A DNA stretch of 64,000 nucleotides from Malacoraja senta (lineage: Eukaryota), in NCBI GenBank assembly GCA_038087875.1, contig JAXLNO010002227.1, positions 1 to 64,000 of the forward strand. Reading direction: 5' to 3'. Below are positions 4,172 to 63,407 of this stretch, piece by piece. The notes under the pieces are model-generated. The model worked only from the letters and a program-made list of their open reading frames with translations. It did not search any database and was not told the DNA's origin. The translations under genes were made by a program, and so were the position numbers. Position 1 is the stretch's first letter. Each line of letters opens with the position of its first letter.

Positions 4172-5374
4172 CTATTTACTGTTGTAATAATTGGGCCATC
4201 TGACAAAACAACATTTAAAATTGTACTGACTAATGTTTTACTTCAGAGTAATCTAATCTAGATCTCCACACTTGTCTTACTCCATATGTAACATGCACAC
4301 AACTCCTCAATAAATGTACTGTTGCAACACTGTACCTAACTGGATTGGTTTCCAACGCATTAAAAAATTTGTAACAAAGCTTGTCTACCATTAGCATTCT
4401 TCTCCGCATAATTTGAAGTACCTACTAATTTATGGGTTTGCTCTGTGTGATTTTTCTTTTCCCCCAATTGGATGTATGGTAGAAATGGCATGATATACAA
4501 GGAAATGGGGCGATTAAACATACAAGGAAAACCTTCGCTCAAGCTGCAAAGTCATGAATTCCTAGAATCCTTTTTCTGTTGGTGTGGAGAAGAAACCTAT
4601 TCTGAAATGGGTATTTGCTTCAATTCTAGAAGAATGTTGATGAACTTTCAGTTCAAGGGTTAGATTTGTGAAACTGTTCCACTGGCTGTTGAACTGCACA
4701 GGAGTTGTGGTATTTTTGCTGCATTTCATTGAGATTCAATTATGTTTGTTTCTCTCAGATAATTCTGGCGGTGTATTTGATTTTCACTCAGTCTTCCTGA
4801 ATAAATATGATCCCAAATAGGCAATAGCCCCTTGCTTTTATTGCCATTTTGTATTTCTCGACCTGTTTGTAGTGGAAAATTGCTTTGCCATGCCCTAATG
4901 AACTTGAGATGATGGTAAAGTGTATTTTGACCATGAATGTCTGTGGTTTTATTTGTAAGATAGAGAGAAACTTTCATCAGCAGCCTGTGCACCCCCTCCT
5001 TAAAACTTGCTTGCATAAACTTTGTGTTGGTAATATTCAGTGTGAATCAAGTGAAAGGAAGTGTTTTGGCAGTCAGGCAGCATCTGTGTGGGGGAAGGGA
5101 GAGGAATGGGCAGAAGGCATTTCAGGTCGGGAGCCTTCTGCAGTTTGATTCAATCAGCCTGAAGAAGGGTCGCGACCCAAAATGTAATTTGTTCATCCCC
5201 TCTCCACAGATGCTACTTGACCTGCTGTTTTAATCAGCACTTGTGTTTTGCTGAAGATTCCAAGTTTCTTGTGTCTCCAAAATGTTGATTTTTTTTCCCT
5301 TTCAGGCATTTATAGCATGAATGATTGTTGACCTTCAAATCAAAACTAAGACAATTTTACTTTTTGTTATACAG

Positions 5375-14000: not shown

Positions 14001-17000
14001 TGAGAGGTTTGTGGGTCTGAAGGCCAATGGTAACTTTTGCAATTACCTTAATGGTGTTTCAGTCGGGTAAAAACATGTTGGTCACTGTCAGGACAATGTG
14101 GGCTAATTTCCTTCACAATCCCCGAAAAGAACATTTCATGTGAATTGTCACCCCTTGGGTTCATCTGATGCAAAACTCATAACACACCAGAAAGAACCTG
14201 GTGGAATAACCAGAGTGATGTGAAACTGTTTGTTGCCATAATTTCATGCCGTGCCAGTGCCCTTTCAGTTGTGCACTGCTGGAGCAAGTCACCTGTTTTC
14301 ACTATTTTTGGTCTGACTCTGAACTTTACTGTCACCATCCATTTCACAGTGGAAACCAACAGCGAGATCGGAGCACCCATTACTATCCGTTTCATGTGAC
14401 GCCTTATCTTACAAAGGTTCGGGCATCTGATGATGACGATGACCAACTATGCTGCCTGATGCTTGCTGAAAGGGTGCATTCGGGATATGAAGGTGAGATT
14501 ATGATCAACAAAATTATCTTTCGCAAGGAAACACTCATTGTGTTTTCTCCTCACCCCAAATCTGCAAAATCATATTTGTTATTAAATGATGTAACATCCT
14601 TCAACCAAATTCAACCAATTTTTTCTGGCTAGCTGGAAAACTGGAAGAACGAGTCAGATAATGAGTGATTAGAACTTATTTTTAATTTAAAGGCAGCCTG
14701 GACAGCCCCCTAATGCCAGGCTGACTGCATGTACTCTTCAGAGTACGATATTTGTTAGAAGCTAACGTACACAAAGTACTGGAGCAACTCGGCAGGTCAG
14801 GCAGCATCTGTGGAGAACATGGAAAGGTGACGTCCTGGGTTGAGACCCTTCTCCCGAAAAGTCAACTATCCATGTTCTCCAGAGATGCTACCTGACCTGC
14901 CGAGTTGCTCCAGCACTTTGTGTACTTTTGTGTAATAACCAGCATTTGCAGTTCTTGTGCATTTATATGTAAAACCAAATTGATAGTTATTAATATATTG
15001 AAATTCTAAGAAGCTGTATGACCTGGTTCAAAGCATAGCACACCGTTTGTAGTTGACTACATTGAGTGTGAGAATTAGCAGACTGAGCATTATGCTTTGA
15101 AGTTTTTAACTTAATAGATGCCATTGGAAAGATCCAAGGCTAATTTAACCGATTAAAAGGGAAAATTTGATTAGACAGCACATTTTTAAAATTGTTTCAT
15201 TTTGTTTTATGTTTTATCAGCGCCAAAGATTCCCCATGATAAGAGGGTGTTTACCACCACTCACTCACCCAGCTGTGTGTTTCAGGACATTGAAGAGAGG
15301 TATGTGGAGAACTAAGTATTTTCGCAGCAATGGCGGAAAGAAACAATTTGTTTTTAATCTAAATTGTATTAAACCTTGTGTAAAATTAAATTCCAAATAA
15401 AATTACCATTCTCGAAACATGAACAAAATTGTTTTAAAAGCTAGGTTTCACCCCCTACAGGGCAAATGATATTTACCTAAATTCAGTTAAATGCTTCAGT
15501 TAGTACGTTTTGGGTAATAGTTCTGTTTTTTTTTGTTTAACTTTATTTTTAAAACAGCCTTGTATTTGACTCAATGCGTTTTTAATATCTTATTGTAAAT
15601 TGCATTGTGCAAATTATTGAATCATTCCATTTTCTTTCACAGGGCTGTTCCTCTATTAGGTTATTTGCCTCAGGATCTCATAGGAATGCCTGTAATGATG
15701 CATCTACACCCTGATGATCAACCTCTCATGCTAAGCATTCATAAAAAAAGTAAGTTTGTAGATGCAATATTTAATTATTATTATTATCTGATGGTCATTT
15801 TTTCCAGCATGGATAACAGTGGGTCGGGTAACATCTCTAGAGAAAAAGGATGGGTGATGTTTCAGATTGGGAACTTTCTTCAGACATAGATAACTGCTAC
15901 TTGATTATTTTTTATTCTTTCAGTACTGAAAAATGCTGGGCAACCTTTTGAACATTCACCAGTCCGTTTCTGCACACAAAGTGGTGAATACATCACAATT
16001 GACACCAGTTGGTCCAGTTTTGTCAATCCCTGGAGCAGAAAAGTATCCTTCATTATCGGAAGACACAAAGTCCGAAGGTAAGTGCTTTGGATTATTATCA
16101 TGAAGATTGATCAATTTAGACATTTTGCAACAAATTAGAATTGTATCTAGCAGTTACTGATTTGATGTTGTGGTATTATTTCAGTGTCTTTTTAATATCA
16201 TTTTTAACTGAGAGGTGAACAGGGATTGTTTAAAGAAAAAAGATGTAGCAAGGATGTGCAGAACTAAGGGTGTTAATGTAGAGGAAAAAAATGTATCCTA
16301 AAATTATGAATTATTTTAAATACTTTTAATTAATCAGGGTGATGATAGGGACTGAAATTATGAAGTGATTATTTTGTGAATCCAGTCGATCTGACTGCAG
16401 TTACTGCCCTAGTATTCAAAAAACAAAATTGGAACTATTATTATGAATATTTGCCTGTCAAATAATGGGCCATAGCAACATAATCTTTGAAATTGTACAT
16501 ATTCATAATCACATATATTAAATGATGACAGATGTAAAATGGGTACTCAGTCTTGTATCTCCCCTTCAACTTCTGATATGTAGAGGTCCTTTGAATGAAG
16601 ATGTGTTTGCTGCTCCGGGCTGTAGTGAATTGAAGGCATTTCATCCTGAAATACAGACCATCACTGAGCAGATTCAACAGCTCTTGCTGCAGGTAAAACT
16701 AATTCACATTGATGAGTGTTTTCAGATTTAAATGCAATTTGTGTCTAATTCAGTGCTTTAAATTCTATTAAGACAGTTATGCTTTCTTATTTTAGCCTGT
16801 TTACAATAATCGTTCCAGTGGGTATGGAAGTTTGGTCAGTAGTAGATCCCATGCACAGATCATCAGTGTTGCCTCTTCCATTGATACTAATGGCAACATC
16901 AATGAAGAGAGACAACTGCACAAACCTGTAAGTCATCTCTTCCACAAGCTAATTCATGCAAACAAATATGTTGATTATCATGCATAAATCAGGGGTTATG

Positions 17001-20000
17001 CTCCTAGAAATGTTTGGTATCGCAGCTTAATGCGAGGCTGCATCTACGCAGACATCAGAAATGCAAGTTGAAAAAAAATTGTGCGTTTATTTTTATTGCA
17101 TATAAATCTCGTTAGAGTAATTTTTATTCTGTATCCCAGATTTTATGGGTCTCTATTTTAGTTTAGTTAGGATATACGGTCCTTAAATTTGTAATTTCAA
17201 TTCTCCAAACTGCAGTATCGTGGGGCTTTGTATTCATTTCGTATTTGTTCAGTAGGAATTACATTTATTTCTTTATTGATCTTTAATGATTATTAATTAA
17301 TGCTTATAATCAGACAATAACATGTAGGTGATGTTGTCCATCGATAAGCCTGAAATTGTTGCTCTTAAAACAAGTAGAAAGAGCCAATTAAATGAATATA
17401 GCTTTGTAGACAAATAAATATTTGCTCTTTGTAAAACTCTTAAGAATTACAAAGATGTCTGATCGTGAGTCATAGTGACTCTCTAAAGGATTTGCATTTG
17501 TATAGCGCCTTTTGGTGATCTCCAGATATTCCGAATTACTTTGAAATCAATTAAATTATTTTTAACGTGATGTATTGCAGGAAAAGTGTATTGTAGGAGA
17601 AGATAGCAGTTAGCTTTGCACAAAAGTGGCAGTGAGAAACATATGGAAATAATCTAGTTTAGTGATGTTGACTGAGCCAAAAAATGGCTGGGCACCTGTG
17701 TTATTCTTTGAAAAATGCAAGGAATCGTTTGCCAAGAGACATAGTTTTGCCTTTCCATGGGCATTTAAATTGAGATGGGCTCAATTTAAATGCCCATGGG
17801 AAGGTGTCTTTTGACTGTGAAGCTCTCCCTTACTAATGTATGGAAATGTTGTTTTAGATTACGTTAAAGGGTGGCACTTGGTTTTGAGAACATTTGGCTT
17901 TGAGACTCTAATGATACCACCGAAACAAGTTTGTCAGCTCCCATATAGAAAATGGAGCACTGGAGTTAATAATATTTTCATTTACTCTTTGAATGCAGTT
18001 GAAAATACTGCTTTAACAATTTTCTGCCATCATTAGTTCATTCAGCAGTTGGCCTAGTACATCCTGAATTCACTATCTAGTTTTTTTGTGACTCAAAAGC
18101 AGAGTCTGCTCTTGAGCAGTCATTAATTTTGGGAGGAAATCATTAACCTTTAGTCCCTTGTCTCTTTCTTTCAGATGGTGGTTTGGAAAGCTGGTAAAGA
18201 TCCCCACACAGGAAGAATTCGAGGACAGACAGAATTCAACAAAATAAAGAGTGAATCAAAGTGCAGACACAGAACTGGTAATAGACTTAATTATTTTGCA
18301 GTCATTATCTAGGCATATACGTAAATGATTTAAACAAATTCTGAGTGAAAAGCACCATGAGTCCAAGAATGACATTTGCCATTACAGCTGTGCTTGTTTC
18401 ATTCACTCTTATTCTGTGAATATGGACCTGATGTAGTCATTTGGATTTACATAGAAAACATCAATGTAAGGAACAATGTAAACATGTTGCTATTTGCCTT
18501 TAAATACTTTGGGACTACAATTTTACTTGAATATGTATACTTTTTCAATATTCAGTTCCTACCATTTTTGAGAACCAGATAAGAATAAGACGAAGGGAGT
18601 CTGGCTATAATACATCTAGCTTCATTTTGACTGAAGTATTTGAAAAGCCAATTTAAATAAATATGACCTGTTTTTTTTTTTAAATTAAGGGAAAACTAAC
18701 AAAAGACTTGATCTCTCCTTACTTCAGAATTTTACGCATTGTTCTCATTGTAGAAGGGCATATATTTTGCAGGAACACAAAAAGAGACAAGTAAACAGAC
18801 TAAAGATGTTAAAGCCAGCCCATCCAAGGGTACTGGAACAAGTAGTGCTGGAAAGAACATGCTCGTGGATGAACCAAGATGTGAGGAACATGCTGGATAT
18901 TGCTATCAGCAAATCAATTGTCTGGATAGTGTAATAAGGTGAGTGGCATTCTGGACCTGAACAAATGTATTTACCAAAACTACAAGGCTTTATTTGTTGA
19001 CCTGGATTTTATCATCAGTTGTGAAGTGACAACTCTCATGAATGGCCTTTAAGAAAGCAGCCACAGAGATACTTGGATCTCTGTGAAGTACATTTCATCT
19101 TTCCTAACATAGGTTGCTAACTGACACCAGCCAGCCCCAGTGACCTGGATCGATCCTGACCTTGGGTACCGTCTGCATGGAGTTTGGACGTTCTGCCTGA
19201 CACGACATGGGTTCTCTCCGGGTGCTCCGGTTTCCTCCCACATTCCAAAGACGTGCGAGTTTGCAGATTAATTGGCTTCTGTAAATTCCCCCCCCTTGTG
19301 TGCAGGATAGAACGAGGGTATGAGTGATCACTGGTCAGTTTGGACTCGGTGGCCCGAAGGGCCTGTTGCCGTGCTGCATCTTAAAACTAAAACCAGCTCC
19401 AGTAGAAATCTTGGGCTCAGCAATAGTAATGGCAACCAGCAGGCTGAGTACCCAGAGCTCAAACAAGAAAGTTTAAAATAAAACACAAGTTTTAATCAGC
19501 TTAAATATTGTAGCATGCGACGTAAAAGTTGAAACATACACATATTGAGCCTCCTTTGAATCATGGTAGTTGACTTTTCGGCAAATGTATCAATCCTTTT
19601 GCTCATGTGAAGGTGGCAGGTATATAGATTTGGATATCCTCTGCTATTTCAGTGTAAAAAATGCACGGCATCTTTTACATCCAAGGTTTATTGCTTTACC
19701 TGAAACAAGTCACGTTCGACAGTGTGGCACACTTTCAATGCCACACTGAAGCATCAACTATGTTCAGAAGTTAGCCTGATGGCCTGCTGAGTCGGGCGAG
19801 ACGGCACCATTGAGCCACATTGACCCTTTTGACTTGTAAGATCAGAAAATATTTGCTTCATCACTGTTTAAAACGCACATACACACTTTTGTCTTGTGCC
19901 CTTTTTAGATACACCAGAATACTGCTTTAAAGTTGAGAGAAAAATGATTAAATAATATGTCGAATGAGTCTGTTTCTCTCTTTTCTGTTACCTCGTTGAT

Positions 20001-23000
20001 TTTTGTTACTTTGGTATTTTTGCAGATATCTGGATAGCTACAATATTCCGTGGACTACAAAACGGAAGTGTGGTTCTTCATCGCCATCGGATGACGACAA
20101 ACGAAAAGTTGATATCGTGAATGATTGTAAAGGTATTTACCAAGTCTGAAATTGAGGTGTTTAGTTTTGTTTCAAATTACCTACCAAGCTACAGAATGTA
20201 CGGAACGTCTGACTTGATTCAAAGATTTAATCTGTATGGTGCCATGAGGTTTCTGAGGCTTATTAGCCTATCTTTATTGCTTTAAAAACAAACCCAGATG
20301 CTAGAAACAAAATGTTGGAGGTCACAGAATGTCACGCAGCATCTCTGAAGAAAGAAACAATTATTATTCCAGTTCTGATCAAGATCTGAAAAATTAACTC
20401 TGTTTCTATCTCCAAGAATGCTGCCTGATTTATTAAATATTTCCATTATTTAGTTTTGTATATATATATATATTTTTTTGCTCAACATATCTTAGTCATT
20501 TAGTAACCACTGAGTGTTTATCGAAAGCCAAATTCGGTATGTTTCACAAAGTCATCCATCGGAGATAAAGTATAAATGCGAGTATTTGACCTGCGGAATT
20601 GCTTTCCTTGTAGCTCCATTAAAGTCTGCAAAGAAGATGCCTTCTGGAGCAGTTGTTGGCACACTTCTGGCACCACGCGCCTTGCGAAGGAAGGCAGCGA
20701 GCGTCACCAGTCGAGGAAGTTACAGCAGCACCATTGTTCATGTGGGAGACAAGAAACCGCAGGCAGATGCAGGTACTGAAATTCACGTTCTAAAAGATCT
20801 CTCAAGAGGAGGTGCAAGTTGGTTAATACACGCACTGCAAGCATTTCTGTGAAGCTTCAATGTCCTGACCTGAGCATGGAAGGAGAAGAATATTGATTTT
20901 TAGTGACCAATAAATGCGATATTTAATAATTTCACAGCACCCACAACTTTTTTTTTTAGCACACTTGACGTAGCAAAATCATTTTGCAGTATCTCACAGG
21001 ATTAAAATGTCATTAATTGTAGGCCACATAAAGAGATGGTAGGGCCATAGCTCAGAAGCTTTGTCTAAAAGGTAGAGTTTGTGAAGGACACAGAGTGCTG
21101 GAGTAACTCGGCAGGTCAGGCAGACATGCTGAGTTACTCCAGCACTTTGTGTCCTTTTGTGTATAAACCAGCATTTGCAGCTCCTTGTTTCTAGATGTTG
21201 TGAACATGTTAAGTTAGGAAACTGGAATGGAGGTGGAGAGTTTTAGTTCCATGGGTTAGGGCCTTGGCAGCTGAACACATGGTCTTCCAACATGGAGCAA
21301 TGAAGCACCAAAATTAGAGGAGCATGGATTACTATGGAAAATATGCCAGAGGAGACTACAGAGGTGGAAAAGACTGTGTGGAAGAACTAAAGTTTTAAAT
21401 TTGAACTATTAGCGAGCCAGGTTCCAATGTAGATTATCAGGCACCGAGATGGTGAATGAACAGAACTTACTGTGATTTTAGCCCTGTGATGGCTATTTAG
21501 TGTGATTTATGGTTAAAAAAATGTAAGTTCTTGAGGCATAAGTAATTTGTATTTCCCAATTGAGGTGCCCTTCTGAAGAAACAATATTAGCTCCACAGGC
21601 TATACCACAATGTTTCTGAATGCTACTTATGTGTGTACACGCAACACGTGTATTTGTTTCCCCACTCCTATGCCCAGATGTGTGGTTGCTAATTCCAGCA
21701 ATGCTACCACGGTCAAACTCATGCCTGACCAACTGGAGCACTTGCTCATTAGGGGAGTTATTATGCCATTATAGTTGATGCACTTGCCTTCATGCAGAAA
21801 AAACACCCTCTTACGCATACAATTTTAAACTTAAAATCTTGACAGAAATCCTATTGGAGGATGGACTTGGCATTGCAGATCCAGCAGAGAACATGACATC
21901 TGCTACGCTGGTCACCACAGCATCTTCTGTGAACCTGGAAAAGGAAGCATTCAAGAAACTCGGTCTCACCAAAGAAGTTCTAGCTGCTCATACACAGAAA
22001 GAAGAGCAGATATTTTTGAGCAAGTTCAAGGAGTTGAGTAAACTAAAACCATTTGGAGCTACTTGCAAATCCTCTTTGCAATATCGGCACAAAGAATATT
22101 CAAGGGATCGTGGTAAGATTTTACAAATAAGGGTTTTTAAATTAATTTTACTTGTAAGCATACAAAATGTGTTGCTGTATATTATCTACGAGAAGAGGCA
22201 ATTGAGGATCAATGTACCATGTTTCATTTCGGGCTAAATTTAGCATATTATCCTATGGTTTTTGTTTTTGTTTTGTTAAATTCTCATGTAGCCTTGCCTG
22301 TTATAGTCATTCCAGTTGCCTTCATGGAACTTTTATAAACTGCTTCTTGGACGATCTGCCAATGTCTTGTCTCTGATTGCTAAAATAAGTTTGAATTGTG
22401 GAGAATCTTTGTTTGAGCTTCAATTTTAAACAGTTAATTTCAGGAGTTGTGGGACCAATATCTATGTCACTCCTTTCATCAACCTTTCAATATAAAAATG
22501 TCCAGAATAAGGTTAGAAGCAAATACTTACAAGTCCCATTTGTTTCCTTTGTAGCCTCTCGAGGATTTGCGTGGAACCGTGGAGAGCCCGGGCACAAAAA
22601 AAGCGGGAAGAATAGGAAGCCTAAAACGAAGCGCATCAAGCAGCAAGGATCATCTGATGGCGCGGCAAGCGGAAGAACCAATCATAGACTCCACCCTTGG
22701 CCCGCACCAATTACTGCACTCATACCTACCTACCAGCTGCCGATGTTTCCAACCCCTGGAGGCATGCCTTTTGCAGCTGACCCATCTCTGGCCAACTTTG
22801 CTGCTCAGGCTCTTCATTACAATCCTCAGACTCCACCATTTTCCGCGCCACTCGTATCCCCGCTGGTGGCAGTTGTGTTGCCCAATTACATCATGTCTCC
22901 GGGACCCGAGACGGCGCACCAGCCAATTTTTGCAAGTAAGCCGCCATTCCCTTCGCAACCAAACTTTTTACCTGCATGGAATTTATTCAAGGCTCCGCCA

Positions 23001-26000
23001 GCCTTTGCACCGCAGTATCGTGACCAGCCTGCACCAGGGAGTCAAGGGCAACAAGGCCACACTTCCCCTCCAAATTTCCATTCTAGGTCCATTTCACCTT
23101 TGCAGCTGAACCTTCTGGATGTGGGGCCCGGATCTACGAAAGCAATTGGACTTGTAGCTGGAAATGAATTAATGGCGGACCGAAGAGTAATGACAAGCAA
23201 CATGAACGGTACAAATGTGGGCACCATTGCAAAGGACGAAGCAGATCTTGTAAGTGGCGTACAAATTATAAACAATAATTGGATTAAATTTCTGAGAAAA
23301 ATAAATCGAGAAAATTGAGGACAGTGTAAATAGAATAAAGTCTCTGAGCTTTCCTTCTGGGCCCTCCCTGCATCTGATACATTTGTGCATGAATTGTGCC
23401 TGGCTGCCACTTCTACTAGGGGGATTTTGATGTGCGCCTGCTCACCCATAGATGTGAGCGCTTGTTTAGAAGAAGATATTCATCGTACTCCTGAGGTCTT
23501 CAGCATTAGCCAAGGGGACCACTCTGAGCTGGTCCCACTCCCAATCTGTGAGGTCCTGTTCTGGAAACAGATTTGAACTTGCCCACTCCTTCATTGTAAC
23601 CCTTTCATTCCCTCCCCTACCTGTTCCCGATCCAATTCACTCCCTCAATTCTAGCACCCATCCCCCATTGCCATCTTCCAACGACTCTACATTCAACCAC
23701 TAATCTATAGACCTGACACTTCCATGCCACTCACACCAACTGATCCCCTGGCTGTCAGCAATCGACTGCAATGGCGCATGATGCCAATTGCCCAGTCTCT
23801 AAAGCTCTTTGTCCCAGAATAAAGTGGGGAGAAAACATTGTGTCTGGAAAAACTCTTAAATGGGACAAGGATTTAAAATTGACCCATTTAAAAAAAAATG
23901 TCATCCATACTTCTCCATTATAATTTCCTGCGTTATTTTTAAATTGCATATGTTGCACCCTTTTTAATTCACTTCCTCCAACCCCCCCCTTCCCCGTACT
24001 TTGTTTTTTCATGGTGAGAAGATGAATAAGCAACAATGTTTAGACATTTGCCATTAACTTGTGGTCCATCGTATTGTCTCCTAGACAGTATTGTTAGCCT
24101 ACATTATCCTGACGATACACAAGACTGATACCCCATTACTCAGTAACGCCATGTGCTGTATACCATGTCCAAAATGTCTGTAGCAATTCTTTTATTTTTT
24201 TAATTCACTATGCAGCAATTTGACATTTTAATTAATAATATATTGCCTGTCTGGTGTGAACATATTGTATGGTTTTTTTTTGCTCTCTAAAGAATGAATC
24301 CCCTACTGAAGCCCAGAACAGTGACTCTCACTCCACTTCTACTGACATGCTGAAGCTGTTATTGCAGTCAGACGTCGGCTCTGCCGGCTCGGGGAGTATG
24401 GAATCGACAAGGTCCGGCTCCTCGGGCTCTCCGTCCAATGGTTGTGGAATGTCCGGAACTGACACAGGTAACTTTGTCCTTTTGTCTTAACCTAACCCAT
24501 AATGTAACACTAACAACTGTCTGAATTATCAGTGGATCTATTCTTTTTTTTTAAACAAAAGATCCATGTCGCCCATGGTTTTCTTTGCTTAAGAGCTTGT
24601 GTAAGTTAACTGATGGGTTGCTTTTGCTTGGGGTTGGGTGACAAAAATAAATAAACAGCACATTAGATCAGACCATCTATTGCTCTGGAAGGAGTTAACC
24701 TGTTTAATAGAATACATCTCCGACCATGGCAACACTCTGGCAATGGTTGGAGATGGCAAAGCATTTTCCAAGGCTCGTATGGTCCTTGAAAGTCCTGGAA
24801 TTTGAATCTGTTTTCAAGGCCTTAAGTCCTTGGATTTATCATGGGTCCTTGAAAGTCATTGAAATAGTGGAGACTTTGAAGCAGGCAGGGACAGTACAGG
24901 TTTGCAGGGACTCGTTGAAAAACAAAGTTTTCCATTATGGTTTCAGATTGAACAACCAAGAGATGAGTAAATGGACCATCAGTGCTCTATTGAAGTACGA
25001 ATATAGATAGGTTAACCATCTTGTGTGTAATTATTATGTAGTTTAGTGTCGTTCTCTGCAACCAGGACTAATGGATTGACTGATCACCTTCTCAGATTTC
25101 CCTGAAAATCAGTGTCTGTACATCAGAGCACACAAGTAACACAACAGAAAACAAGGTCTCAACTCCAAATTCCAATAGGCATTTGGCAATAATTCGAGCT
25201 ATATTCATGACTTCGAAGGAACTTTGAATTGAAAGTTGATTTTTCTGCTGTGCTTTTTGTACCAGAGGTGTGCAAAACATGATTTTCAATCAAATTTGAG
25301 ATGGAGACCAACCAACCTTCTTTCTTACTTTTATTTGGTACAGAATCAAATCATCCAATACGAAGCAATTTATATAAAAGTCTCCAATAAACCATCAATG
25401 TTTGCTGGATTTTGGTCCTTGAAGATTGGATTTTTGGACCTTAAGTCCTTAAAGTCCTCGAATTTAAAGCTGTTCCAAGTGTACAAACCCTGATATTCAC
25501 CAAAGACATGTGGGCTTGTACGTTAACTGGCCTTTGTAAACTTGCAGCTAATATGTAGGGAGTGGATGGGGAAGTGGAATACCGTGCAACTAGTATGTAC
25601 GGGTGATCAATGCTTGGCATGGACTCGGGCCAAAGGGCCTGTGAACATGCTGTATCTCCAAAATAAACCAAACCAGAAGGACTGCAACAGTTCCAGAAGG
25701 TGGCTCAAGTGGAGAGCCAAATAAAGTGAAAGGTGGAGAGCCTAATTCTCCAGATCAATTTGGGGGAGGCAATAGATGCTTATCTTGCCTTTGTTTTTCT
25801 TTGTTTGTCATGATTAGGTAGTAGCTGCTTGAGCAGCAGCAAATATTTTGGAAGCAACGACTCTGACAATGAAAAAATAGACGCGAGAACCATGATGACC
25901 TATCAACTACCATTCAGGTAAGTGCCCAAAATCCCAATTGTGTTGACTCCAACTTCAAAGGCTCTCCATATTGTTCTGTCTTAAGGCGAAAGAGTACCTA

Positions 26001-61300: not shown

Positions 61301-61744
61301 TTACTGTAGGATTAGACAGGGGCGCTGCTCCCCCTTCCTCGCCCCCACCCAAAATGATCTGTAAAATGTAAATATAAGCTTTACGTGTAGGAAGGAACTG
61401 CAGATGCTGGTTTACACCGAAGATAGACACGAAATGCTGGAGTAACTCAGCGGGACAGGCAGCATCATCTAGCATTTTCTTTTTATATCTTCAATAGAAA
61501 CTTTAAATACACTACACCTAAACACAATCGCTACTGGAGGGACTAGAGGATTCGGGGCATGTTTTACGAGGATGGACAAACAGGGAGTAGTAATTCACAA
61601 AGTCGGGACAAAATGCATTCTAGACTCTTAGAAACAAGGGAAAAAAGAGCCCAGACTGAGTATTATTTCCCTATTCACTTTGGTTATAGGGTTGGTTAAG
61701 GGGTTTAGTGTGGTAACTTTGCTTAAACTTTGCTTAAACTTTGC

Positions 61745-63407
61745 TTTGCCATGAAACCTACTACCTGCCCCCTCGAAATTGTCCCCTCTGCCCTTCTAAA
61801 GGATGTCATTACAATAGCCGGTCCCAGCATCCTTGCCATCTTCAACAGTTCTCTGGCCACTGGCACTGTTCCTACGTGCTTCAAGCATGCGGTGGTCCAG
61901 CCCCTCCTGAAAAAATCTAACCTCGACCCCACCTTGCCAAGCAACTACAGACCTATTTCAAAACTGCCTTTCCTTTCAAAAGCCCTAGAAAAGGTAATTT
62001 TAAGTCAACTTATGCCTTACCTTCACCAAAATACTATCTTGGAAACTCTCCAATCAAGTTTCAGGGTCCACCACAGCACAGAGTCTGCCTTGTCAAAGGT
62101 ACATAATGACCTACTTCTCACCGTTGACTCCGACGACTGTGCAATCCTGCTCCTTCTCAACCTCAGCGCAGCATTTGATACTGTTGACCACACCATCCTA
62201 ATTGACCGTCTCCGGTACGGGGTTGGTATTGATGGAACTGCCCTGAGCTGGTTCATCTCCTACCTCAAAGGTAGGAGTTTCTCTACTAACATAGGCAACT
62301 CTTTCTCCTCCCCAGCTAGCCTCTGCTGCGGGTTCCACAAGGTTCCATCCTTGGCCCCATTCTCTTCTCCCTGTATATGCTCCCCTTAGGCCAAGTCATT
62401 CAAAGGCATGGCATTACCTTCCATTGCTATGCAGACGATACACAACTCTATCTCCCCCTGAAGCCCAATAACCGATCAAATCTACTTAACCTTATCCACT
62501 GCCTCGAGGATATAAAGTGTTGGATGGCCCAGAACGTCCTCCAACTAAACGAGAGTAAGTCTGAGGTCATCCTTCTCGGCCCCTCGGATTCAATCAAAAC
62601 GATAGCAGGCAGCCTTGGAAGCCTTACCCCATTACTCAAACCTCACATCCAAAACCTTGGCGTGATATTTGACTCAGCATTGAAATTTGACAAACAAGTC
62701 AATCCGTGGTAAAAGCTAGCTTCTTCCAGCTTCGGCCGATAGCTAAAATAAAACAATTCCTCCAGTTTGATGACCTCGAAAAGATCATCCACACATTTAT
62801 CTCCTCCCGCCTCGATTACTGCAACACTGGCATCAGCCAATCTTCCCTGTCCCGCCTGCAACTGATCCAAAACGCTGCAGCGAGACTCCTGGCAAGGCTC
62901 CCGAAAAAGGGATGACATCACCCCGATTCTAGCCTCTCTCCACTGGCTCCCTGTGCGGTTCCGAATATATTTCAAGATCCTTCTTTATGTTTACAAAGCC
63001 CTTAATGGGCTTGCCCCCACCTACAGCAAAAGTCTGCTTACCCACCGCACCACCTCCAGGTCCCTCACTTCGGCCGACTTGGGGTTACTGAACATCTAGG
63101 CATAAGCTCAGGGGCGACCGCGCCTTTGTGGTTGCAGCTCCTAGACTGTGGAACAGCATCCCTCTTCCCTTCAGAACTGCCCCCTCCATCGACTCTTTTA
63201 AGTCGAGACTTAAAACTCATCTTTACTCTCAAGCTTTTCTTGACGTCCTCTGAGGGAGGACTATATGTATGTATTTATGTATGTACTTAATCTATGAACC
63301 ACTGTTGTATAACGTTAGTACCTCCACCAATGTAAAGTACTTTGGTCAACGAGAGTTGTTTATTAAATGTGCTATAGAAATAAAAGTGACTTGACTTGAC
63401 TTGACTT
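61745..63407 (+). mobile_element. 5'-truncated L2-clade LINE (RT domain, frameshifted)
   Basis: NYRPISKLPFLSK…HSTESAL…LSAAFDTVDH…HCYADDTQLY…SRLDYCN; 3' tail ending (GACTT)n. Confidence 0.92.

Follow-up and report, generated by a model that had tools for sequence, protein, structure and literature searches.

The PER2 gene of the skate Malacoraja senta encodes a FASP cluster of four serines in SxxS register, one unit fewer than the five found in most vertebrate PER proteins, and the same shortened cluster is seen in all shark, ray and skate PER2 sequences that cover this part of the protein. With a probability of roughly three in four, we read the gene as an intact skate PER2 in which a 9-bp in-frame deletion in the ancestor of sharks, rays and skates removed the unit holding human S665, kept the priming serine in place and left a working four-step phosphoswitch. 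Where this reading concerns kinase behaviour and protein stability, it is extrapolated from human and mouse peptides. The stretch of DNA analysed, referred to below as the window, comprises 64,000 nucleotides (positions 1 to 64,000 of the forward strand of contig JAXLNO010002227.1, assembly GCA_038087875.1).

Results

The window carries a skate PER2 gene

A PER2 gene of 21 exons was recovered on the plus strand at 5370–33464 by tblastn of skate PER2 proteins combined with a search for splice sites, and the joined exons encode 1155 amino acids free of stop codons. The model starts downstream of the first ~80 codons, which were not located, and one junction, from 16930 to 18178, was kept at its tblastn coordinates with no GT-AG resolution. 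Over the recovered length the model is collinear with PER proteins and is 90–91% identical, end to end across ~1150 residues, to three skate PER2 proteins, among them Amblyraja radiata XP_032886980.1. Identity is 86% to Rhinoraja, 76–78% to rays, 66–69% to sharks and 56% to chimaera. A maximum-likelihood tree of 22 PER proteins places the model within the PER2 clade with support of 100/100; chondrichthyan PER2 and the grouping of the window with Amblyraja received the same support (100/100 each). Precomputed Pfam hits, which belong to the proteins of the skate relatives and not to the window model, are PF23170, PF21353, PF08447, PF14598 and PF12114; in testing for membership of vertebrate PER2 we counted the model, by way of these relatives, as matching the PER architecture of bHLH_PER, PAS-A, PAS-B and Period_C. 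The gene in the window is an intact, spliced skate orthologue of PER2.

Several further features of the gene and its surroundings were observed. The stem branches of batoids (0.17) and skates (0.19) in the PER2 tree are long compared with sharks (Scyliorhinus, 0.09), and these lengths, together with the changes in the FASP spacers described below, would fit faster evolution of PER2 in skates. At 23026–23027 two related species have 24 additional bases, ~8 codons (..PADDEKLS.. in a skate PER2); the insert is missing in both runs of the window's organism and represents a species-level in-frame indel in a large proline-rich exon. Two intronic segments, 19162–19469 and 21010–21317, have word depths that reach into the millions in each of the four runs, those of other species among them, and look like very abundant SINE-like interspersed repeats shared by skates. 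Downstream of PER2, long open frames on the plus strand at 61727–62709 contain a reverse-transcriptase-like motif (..YADDTQLY..) and are probably a fragment of a non-LTR retrotransposon.

A FASP exon with four register serines

The FASP exon lies at 20614–20772 on the plus strand. It is 159 nt long, with split codons at both ends and AG/CT..CAG/GT boundaries, the acceptor ending in ccttgtag and the donor beginning with gtactg. An RNA contig from a related species matches positions 20612–20769 without a gap and then continues into unlike sequence on both sides, as a spliced message would. The original prediction stated that 20682–20729 on the plus strand encodes four serines in SxxS register, and translation of the window bears this out: within the cluster (20691–20729), the register serines are encoded by AGC at 20700–20702, AGT at 20709–20711, AGT at 20718–20720 and AGC at 20727–20729. 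The canonical PER1/2 FASP has five. That five-serine reference agrees with the published peptides of human PER2 (GKAE-pS-VA-pS-LT-pS-QC-pS-YA; bioRxiv 10.1101/2022.06.24.497549) and mouse PER2 (LPGKAESVVSLTSQ; PMC12709424), as well as with reviews that describe the FASP region as a five-serine cluster.

It was suggested at the outset that the missing 9 nt might be an artefact. A collapse of 9 nt in this assembly, or an artefact of annotation, appears vanishingly improbable as an explanation. Logan contigs from two runs on two samples of the window's organism, which may derive from the same material as the assembly, cover 19337–21113 with 0 differences and 0 gaps and hence match the FASP exon exactly. 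In related species, a DNA contig from one and an RNA contig from another span the exon and show substitutions only, with no indel. Finally, the FASP region is equally long in 17 other elasmobranch proteins, which were drawn from independent assemblies or transcriptomes.

Four serines throughout elasmobranchs, five in chimaera

Register serines were counted in 332 full-length PER proteins bearing the STIVHV anchor motif. Five were present in 311 of them and four in 20, in agreement with the earlier statement that the window cluster is one SxxS unit short of its bony-vertebrate PER1/PER2 counterparts. The shortened cluster had implicitly been read as special to this genome. Instead, 17 of the 20 four-serine proteins are elasmobranch PER2, and they include every elasmobranch PER2 containing the region (13 named species in nine orders, plus further skates). 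The others are a PER2-like protein from anchovy and two amphibian PER3s (serine lost by substitution); carp PER2, which is too short for the 332-protein count, also has four. Five serines are found in the chimaera Callorhinchus (PRKAESIVSFTSQCSYRS; FASP peptide form RKAESIVSFTSQCSYRS), in lamprey, the coelacanth Latimeria, gar, the bowfin Amia, the bichir Polypterus and the lungfish Protopterus, and likewise in caecilian, Xenopus and mammals. Since all elasmobranchs have four serines and the chimaera has five, the loss is placed on the elasmobranch stem, after the holocephalan split. The splits that bound it are of the order of 400 and 250–300 million years old.

Among elasmobranchs, one cluster peptide is shared by sharks of six orders (Hemiscyllium, Stegostoma, Cetorhinus, Heterodontus, Scyliorhinus, Mustelus and Pristiophorus). 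The corresponding form is LPRKAASV(T/I)SQGSYSS in stingrays, sawfish and electric ray and LRRKAAS(V/I)(T/I)S(R/P)GS(Y/C)(S/R)S in skates, and the cluster region of Heptranchias, again with four serines, is LPRKAESVTSRCSYSS (FASP peptide form RKAESVTSRCSYSS). None of the four register serines changes in any of the 18 elasmobranch sequences compared (18/18), and each of the six spacer positions varies. Invariant serines set among variable spacers are the pattern expected of a phospho-cluster that is still under selection, here purifying selection on the four serines.

The searchable literature on elasmobranch clock genes and on FASP variants of sharks yielded no report of a FASP with four serines in elasmobranchs. 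A sequence search of the PDB with the FASP exon gave no match among chains of at least 20 residues, a scope outside which FASP peptides may fall. The annotated PER2 of the whale shark Rhincodon typus (..LSLP/KILLEDR..) is without the ~30 residues that hold the FASP cluster; this gap could stem from the way the gene was annotated, from use of an internal donor site or from a fault in the assembly.

The lost unit is that of the second serine

According to the original prediction, the deletion took out ESV and thereby the priming serine (human S662), which would cripple the stabilising arm and bias PER2 towards degradation, or else would leave priming to a basophilic kinase acting through the RRK sequence. 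Set against human KAESVASLTS, a deletion of ESV needs only one further change in the cluster, L to V. The Ala of human VAS is not general, however: mouse and most outgroups have VVS, and there an internal deletion is cheaper. With the chimaera protein as the sole reference, internal and N-terminal gaps tie at two substitutions each.

The orthologue alignment that had been proposed as a check places the gap inside the cluster and not at ESV. MAFFT alignment of 28 protein segments put it between KAASV and TS in every elasmobranch, and alignment of seven DNA segments gave a single clean 9-nt gap right after AGC-G. Protein and DNA alignments therefore agree that across elasmobranchs the gap follows Ser-Val, between KAxSV and TS. 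Codon usage points the same way. Serine codons fall into two classes, AGY and TCN, and no single step leads from one to the other without passing through another amino acid. In the four outgroups of the codon test (gar PER2, gar PER1b, Xenopus PER2 and lamprey PER, with no holocephalan DNA in the set) the five serines read AGY-TCN-AGY-AGY-AGY, whereas the three elasmobranchs (the window, Amblyraja and Heptranchias) use AGY for every register serine. Since serine 2 is the TCN codon of the outgroups and elasmobranchs have AGY only, the lost serine is identified as serine 2, human S665. Removal of TGGTCTCCA from gar PER1b (AGC GTG GTC TCC ATC ACC AGC) yields AGC GTC ACC AGC and so reproduces the elasmobranch sequence exactly.

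On the evidence of the DNA alignment and the missing TCN serine, the retained priming serine and its Val at +1 (AGC GTC) lie at 20700–20705, and the scar of the 9-nt deletion would sit inside the GTC codon, after 20703. The exact identity of the deleted triplet cannot be proven, because the units repeat. Heptranchias bears on the same question, as it has the complete KAESV priming context and yet four serines (KAESVTSRCSYSS). The gap position, the codon classes and the intact KAESV of Heptranchias thus place the loss at serine 2, and deletion of the priming serine is correspondingly very improbable. A point in its favour comes from an engineered protein: in the S662A/L666V rescue, a downstream serine primes once it has gained Val at +1 (PMC12709424).

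Priming context and the basic flank

Priming of the FASP by CK1 at a non-consensus site needs Lys at −3, Glu at −1 and Val at +1; with Ala at −3 or −1 the apparent Km is roughly ten times higher, and the greatest damage comes from losing the Val at +1 (PMC12709424). PER3, which is without Lys −3 and Glu −1, becomes a CK1 substrate only once those residues are introduced (PMC12709424). The first serine of the window has Lys at −3 and Val at +1, and Glu −1 is replaced by Ala. This replacement is found in 17 of the 18 elasmobranch sequences, Heptranchias having Glu, and it also occurs in the five-serine PER2 of coelacanth. All 18 have Lys at −3, as do nearly all of the PER1/PER2 rows in the comparison, which sets the elasmobranch cluster apart from the PER3 type. 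At +1, Val has become Ile in Amblyraja, Rhinoraja and two read-derived relatives, and lamprey PER has Ala. Given these residues in skates and lamprey, the human priming rules may be incompletely transferable.

Comparison of the 18 elasmobranch sequences also clarifies the upstream flank, R(−5) R(−4) K(−3) A(−2) A(−1), at 20685–20699 on the plus strand. The basic RRK had been described as new, and in skates there is indeed an extra Arg at −5; it is restricted to the five skate sequences and arose by CCA to CGA. The other two residues are older: Lys −3 is ancestral and is used by CK1, and Arg −4 occurs in all chondrichthyans, the five-serine chimaera included. Arg −4 thus predates the deletion and Arg −5 was gained later, so the basic residues did not arise with the deletion. 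The consensus for PKA is RRxS and that for Akt/RSK is RxRxxS. Judged against these sequences, the flank contains no strict basophilic-kinase motif, neither −3 nor −2 being Arg; RRKAAS is not a PKA site, and it fits the Akt type only loosely because of Lys −3. Priming by a basophilic kinase therefore finds no support in the sequences compared.

Degron and docking segments are retained

It had been noted that the destabilising degron and both CK1-docking motifs remain in the gene. Translation confirms the SSGYGS beta-TrCP phosphodegron downstream of PAS-B, at 16814–16831 on the plus strand, and it is kept in every orthologue checked, from lamprey to mammals. The FASP cluster sits between two conserved plus-strand segments, one upstream at 18904–18939 and one downstream at 21959–22045, which from their positions and motif sequences we take to be the putative CK1BD-A and CK1BD-B, respectively; on this assignment both docking motifs remain. 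This arrangement matches that given in a review, in which CK1BD-A and CK1BD-B flank the FASP region of PER.

Sequence differences were seen around some of these elements. The flanks of the degron (16805–16852) differ in skates: in the ray Narcine, all the sharks examined and most bony vertebrates, SSGYGS is immediately preceded by Gly and followed by LGSNGSH or LGSSGSH, and the window departs from this pattern. At 18895–18939, the Ser of SYQQINC is Cys in all elasmobranchs recovered by pattern search (two named skates, two rays, sawfish and three sharks), and Ser is kept in coelacanth, Xenopus and mammals. Among predicted proteins, many isoforms X2 of PER1, PER2 and PER3 from turtle, lizard and frog are without both FASP-flanking segments, which suggests that the CK1-binding domain may be skipped; some bird isoforms X2 are without the upstream segment only.

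Discussion

The events that we propose begin with an in-frame deletion of 9 bp in the ancestor shared by sharks, rays and skates, once the chimaeras had branched off. This deletion would have taken residues +2 to +4, counted from the priming serine, and the second serine (human S665) among them; the priming Ser-Val would then have abutted the third unit's Thr-Ser with the SxxS register unbroken. CK1 delta/epsilon, docked on the two flanking segments, would still prime the first serine, although with Ala at −1 priming would be slower if the roughly tenfold rise in apparent Km of the human peptide applies. The kinase would then phosphorylate the three downstream serines through pSxxS recognition. 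A product with four phosphoserines would offer two binding registers as against three, and both feedback and the stabilisation of PER2 would probably be somewhat weaker than with five serines unless compensated elsewhere. Because the SxxS chain is unbroken, we infer that a four-step switch works; the most likely state is a functional FASP, perhaps with weaker priming and feedback, and a switch that leans somewhat towards degradation is a reasonable quantitative prediction.

In human PER2, FASP phosphorylation is strictly sequential and inhibition grows with the number of phosphoserines, and it has been proposed that the 3p, 4p and 5p products have 1, 2 and 3 binding microstates, respectively (bioRxiv 10.1101/2022.06.24.497549). 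The shortened cluster might nevertheless be a functionally neutral length variant, if three phosphoserines suffice to fill the two anion sites and the active site of CK1 and four are then equivalent to five. The 2p, 3p and 4p FASP peptides do bind CK1 alike, in one mode, and 4pFASP inhibits priming in trans; yet inhibition climbs step by step as sites are added, and the half-life of human PER2::LUC is shortened by S671A and by S674A (bioRxiv 10.1101/2022.06.24.497549), so the loss of one unit may matter more than assumed. Anchovy and carp also have PER2 paralogues that independently became one unit shorter, but these are duplicated genes, in which such a loss would be more tolerable. The maintenance of the variant throughout the elasmobranch crown group is also consistent with neutrality. 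On balance we regard a neutral variant as unlikely, while giving it some weight, and favour the deletion of the S665 unit with a quantitative effect on the switch.

Several known systems help to place the elasmobranch cluster. It shares with the mammalian PER1/PER2 FASP (human S662–S674) its position between docking segments, Lys −3, Val +1, the unbroken SxxS chain, the SSGYGS degron and the tail of the cluster. The skate protein differs from it in being without the S665 unit and in having Ala at −1, as is the case in 17 of the 18 elasmobranch sequences; skates further add Arg −5 and change the spacer QC to RG. The FASP-like region of mammalian PER3 (mouse TLSTAALSVASGISQ), which is reported to be a non-substrate of CK1, also departs at −1. 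That region has five register positions with neither Lys −3 nor Glu −1, however, whereas the skate protein keeps Lys −3 and is a PER2 by phylogeny. The four-serine PER2 paralogues of teleosts, in Engraulis encrasicolus (PER2-like, KAESATSQCSYSS) and Cyprinus carpio (PER2, KADSVVSQCSYSS), have likewise lost an internal unit and kept the first. These teleost losses concern single species or lineages with duplicated per2, in contrast to the clade-wide loss in a single-copy PER2 of elasmobranchs. The engineered human variants, S665A and S662A/L666V among them, have fewer phosphosites and a graded loss of feedback inhibition; they break the chain downstream by point substitution, whereas the natural deletion leaves it continuous.

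The consequences would be larger if elasmobranchs had no other Period gene. Protein searches with Latimeria PER1 and caecilian PER3 returned no chondrichthyan among the best 120 of about 2200 matches each, and in a G3 paper the statement about cartilaginous fishes covers per2 copy number alone and is ambiguous on this point. We consider doubtful the combined reading in which PER2 is the sole Period gene of skates, or of all elasmobranchs, and its four-serine, −1 Ala FASP acts as a natural hypomorph of the stabilising arm. Were this so, a vertebrate subclass would have been clocked for hundreds of millions of years on such a FASP, the fifth serine and the −1 Glu would be tuning elements and not requirements, and compensation would have to be sought in CK1, in the flank of the degron or in an altered CRY-binding tail.

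In conclusion, the elasmobranch FASP differs from the known switch in quantity and does not introduce a new mechanism. In the model put forward in the literature, the number of FASP phosphosites sets the strength of CK1 feedback inhibition and hence PER stability and circadian period. A clade-wide FASP with four serines, a continuous chain and the priming serine in place is a natural test of the idea that each phosphoserine adds one binding register, and the same variant tests the weight of the −1 Glu without the use of engineered alanine blocks.
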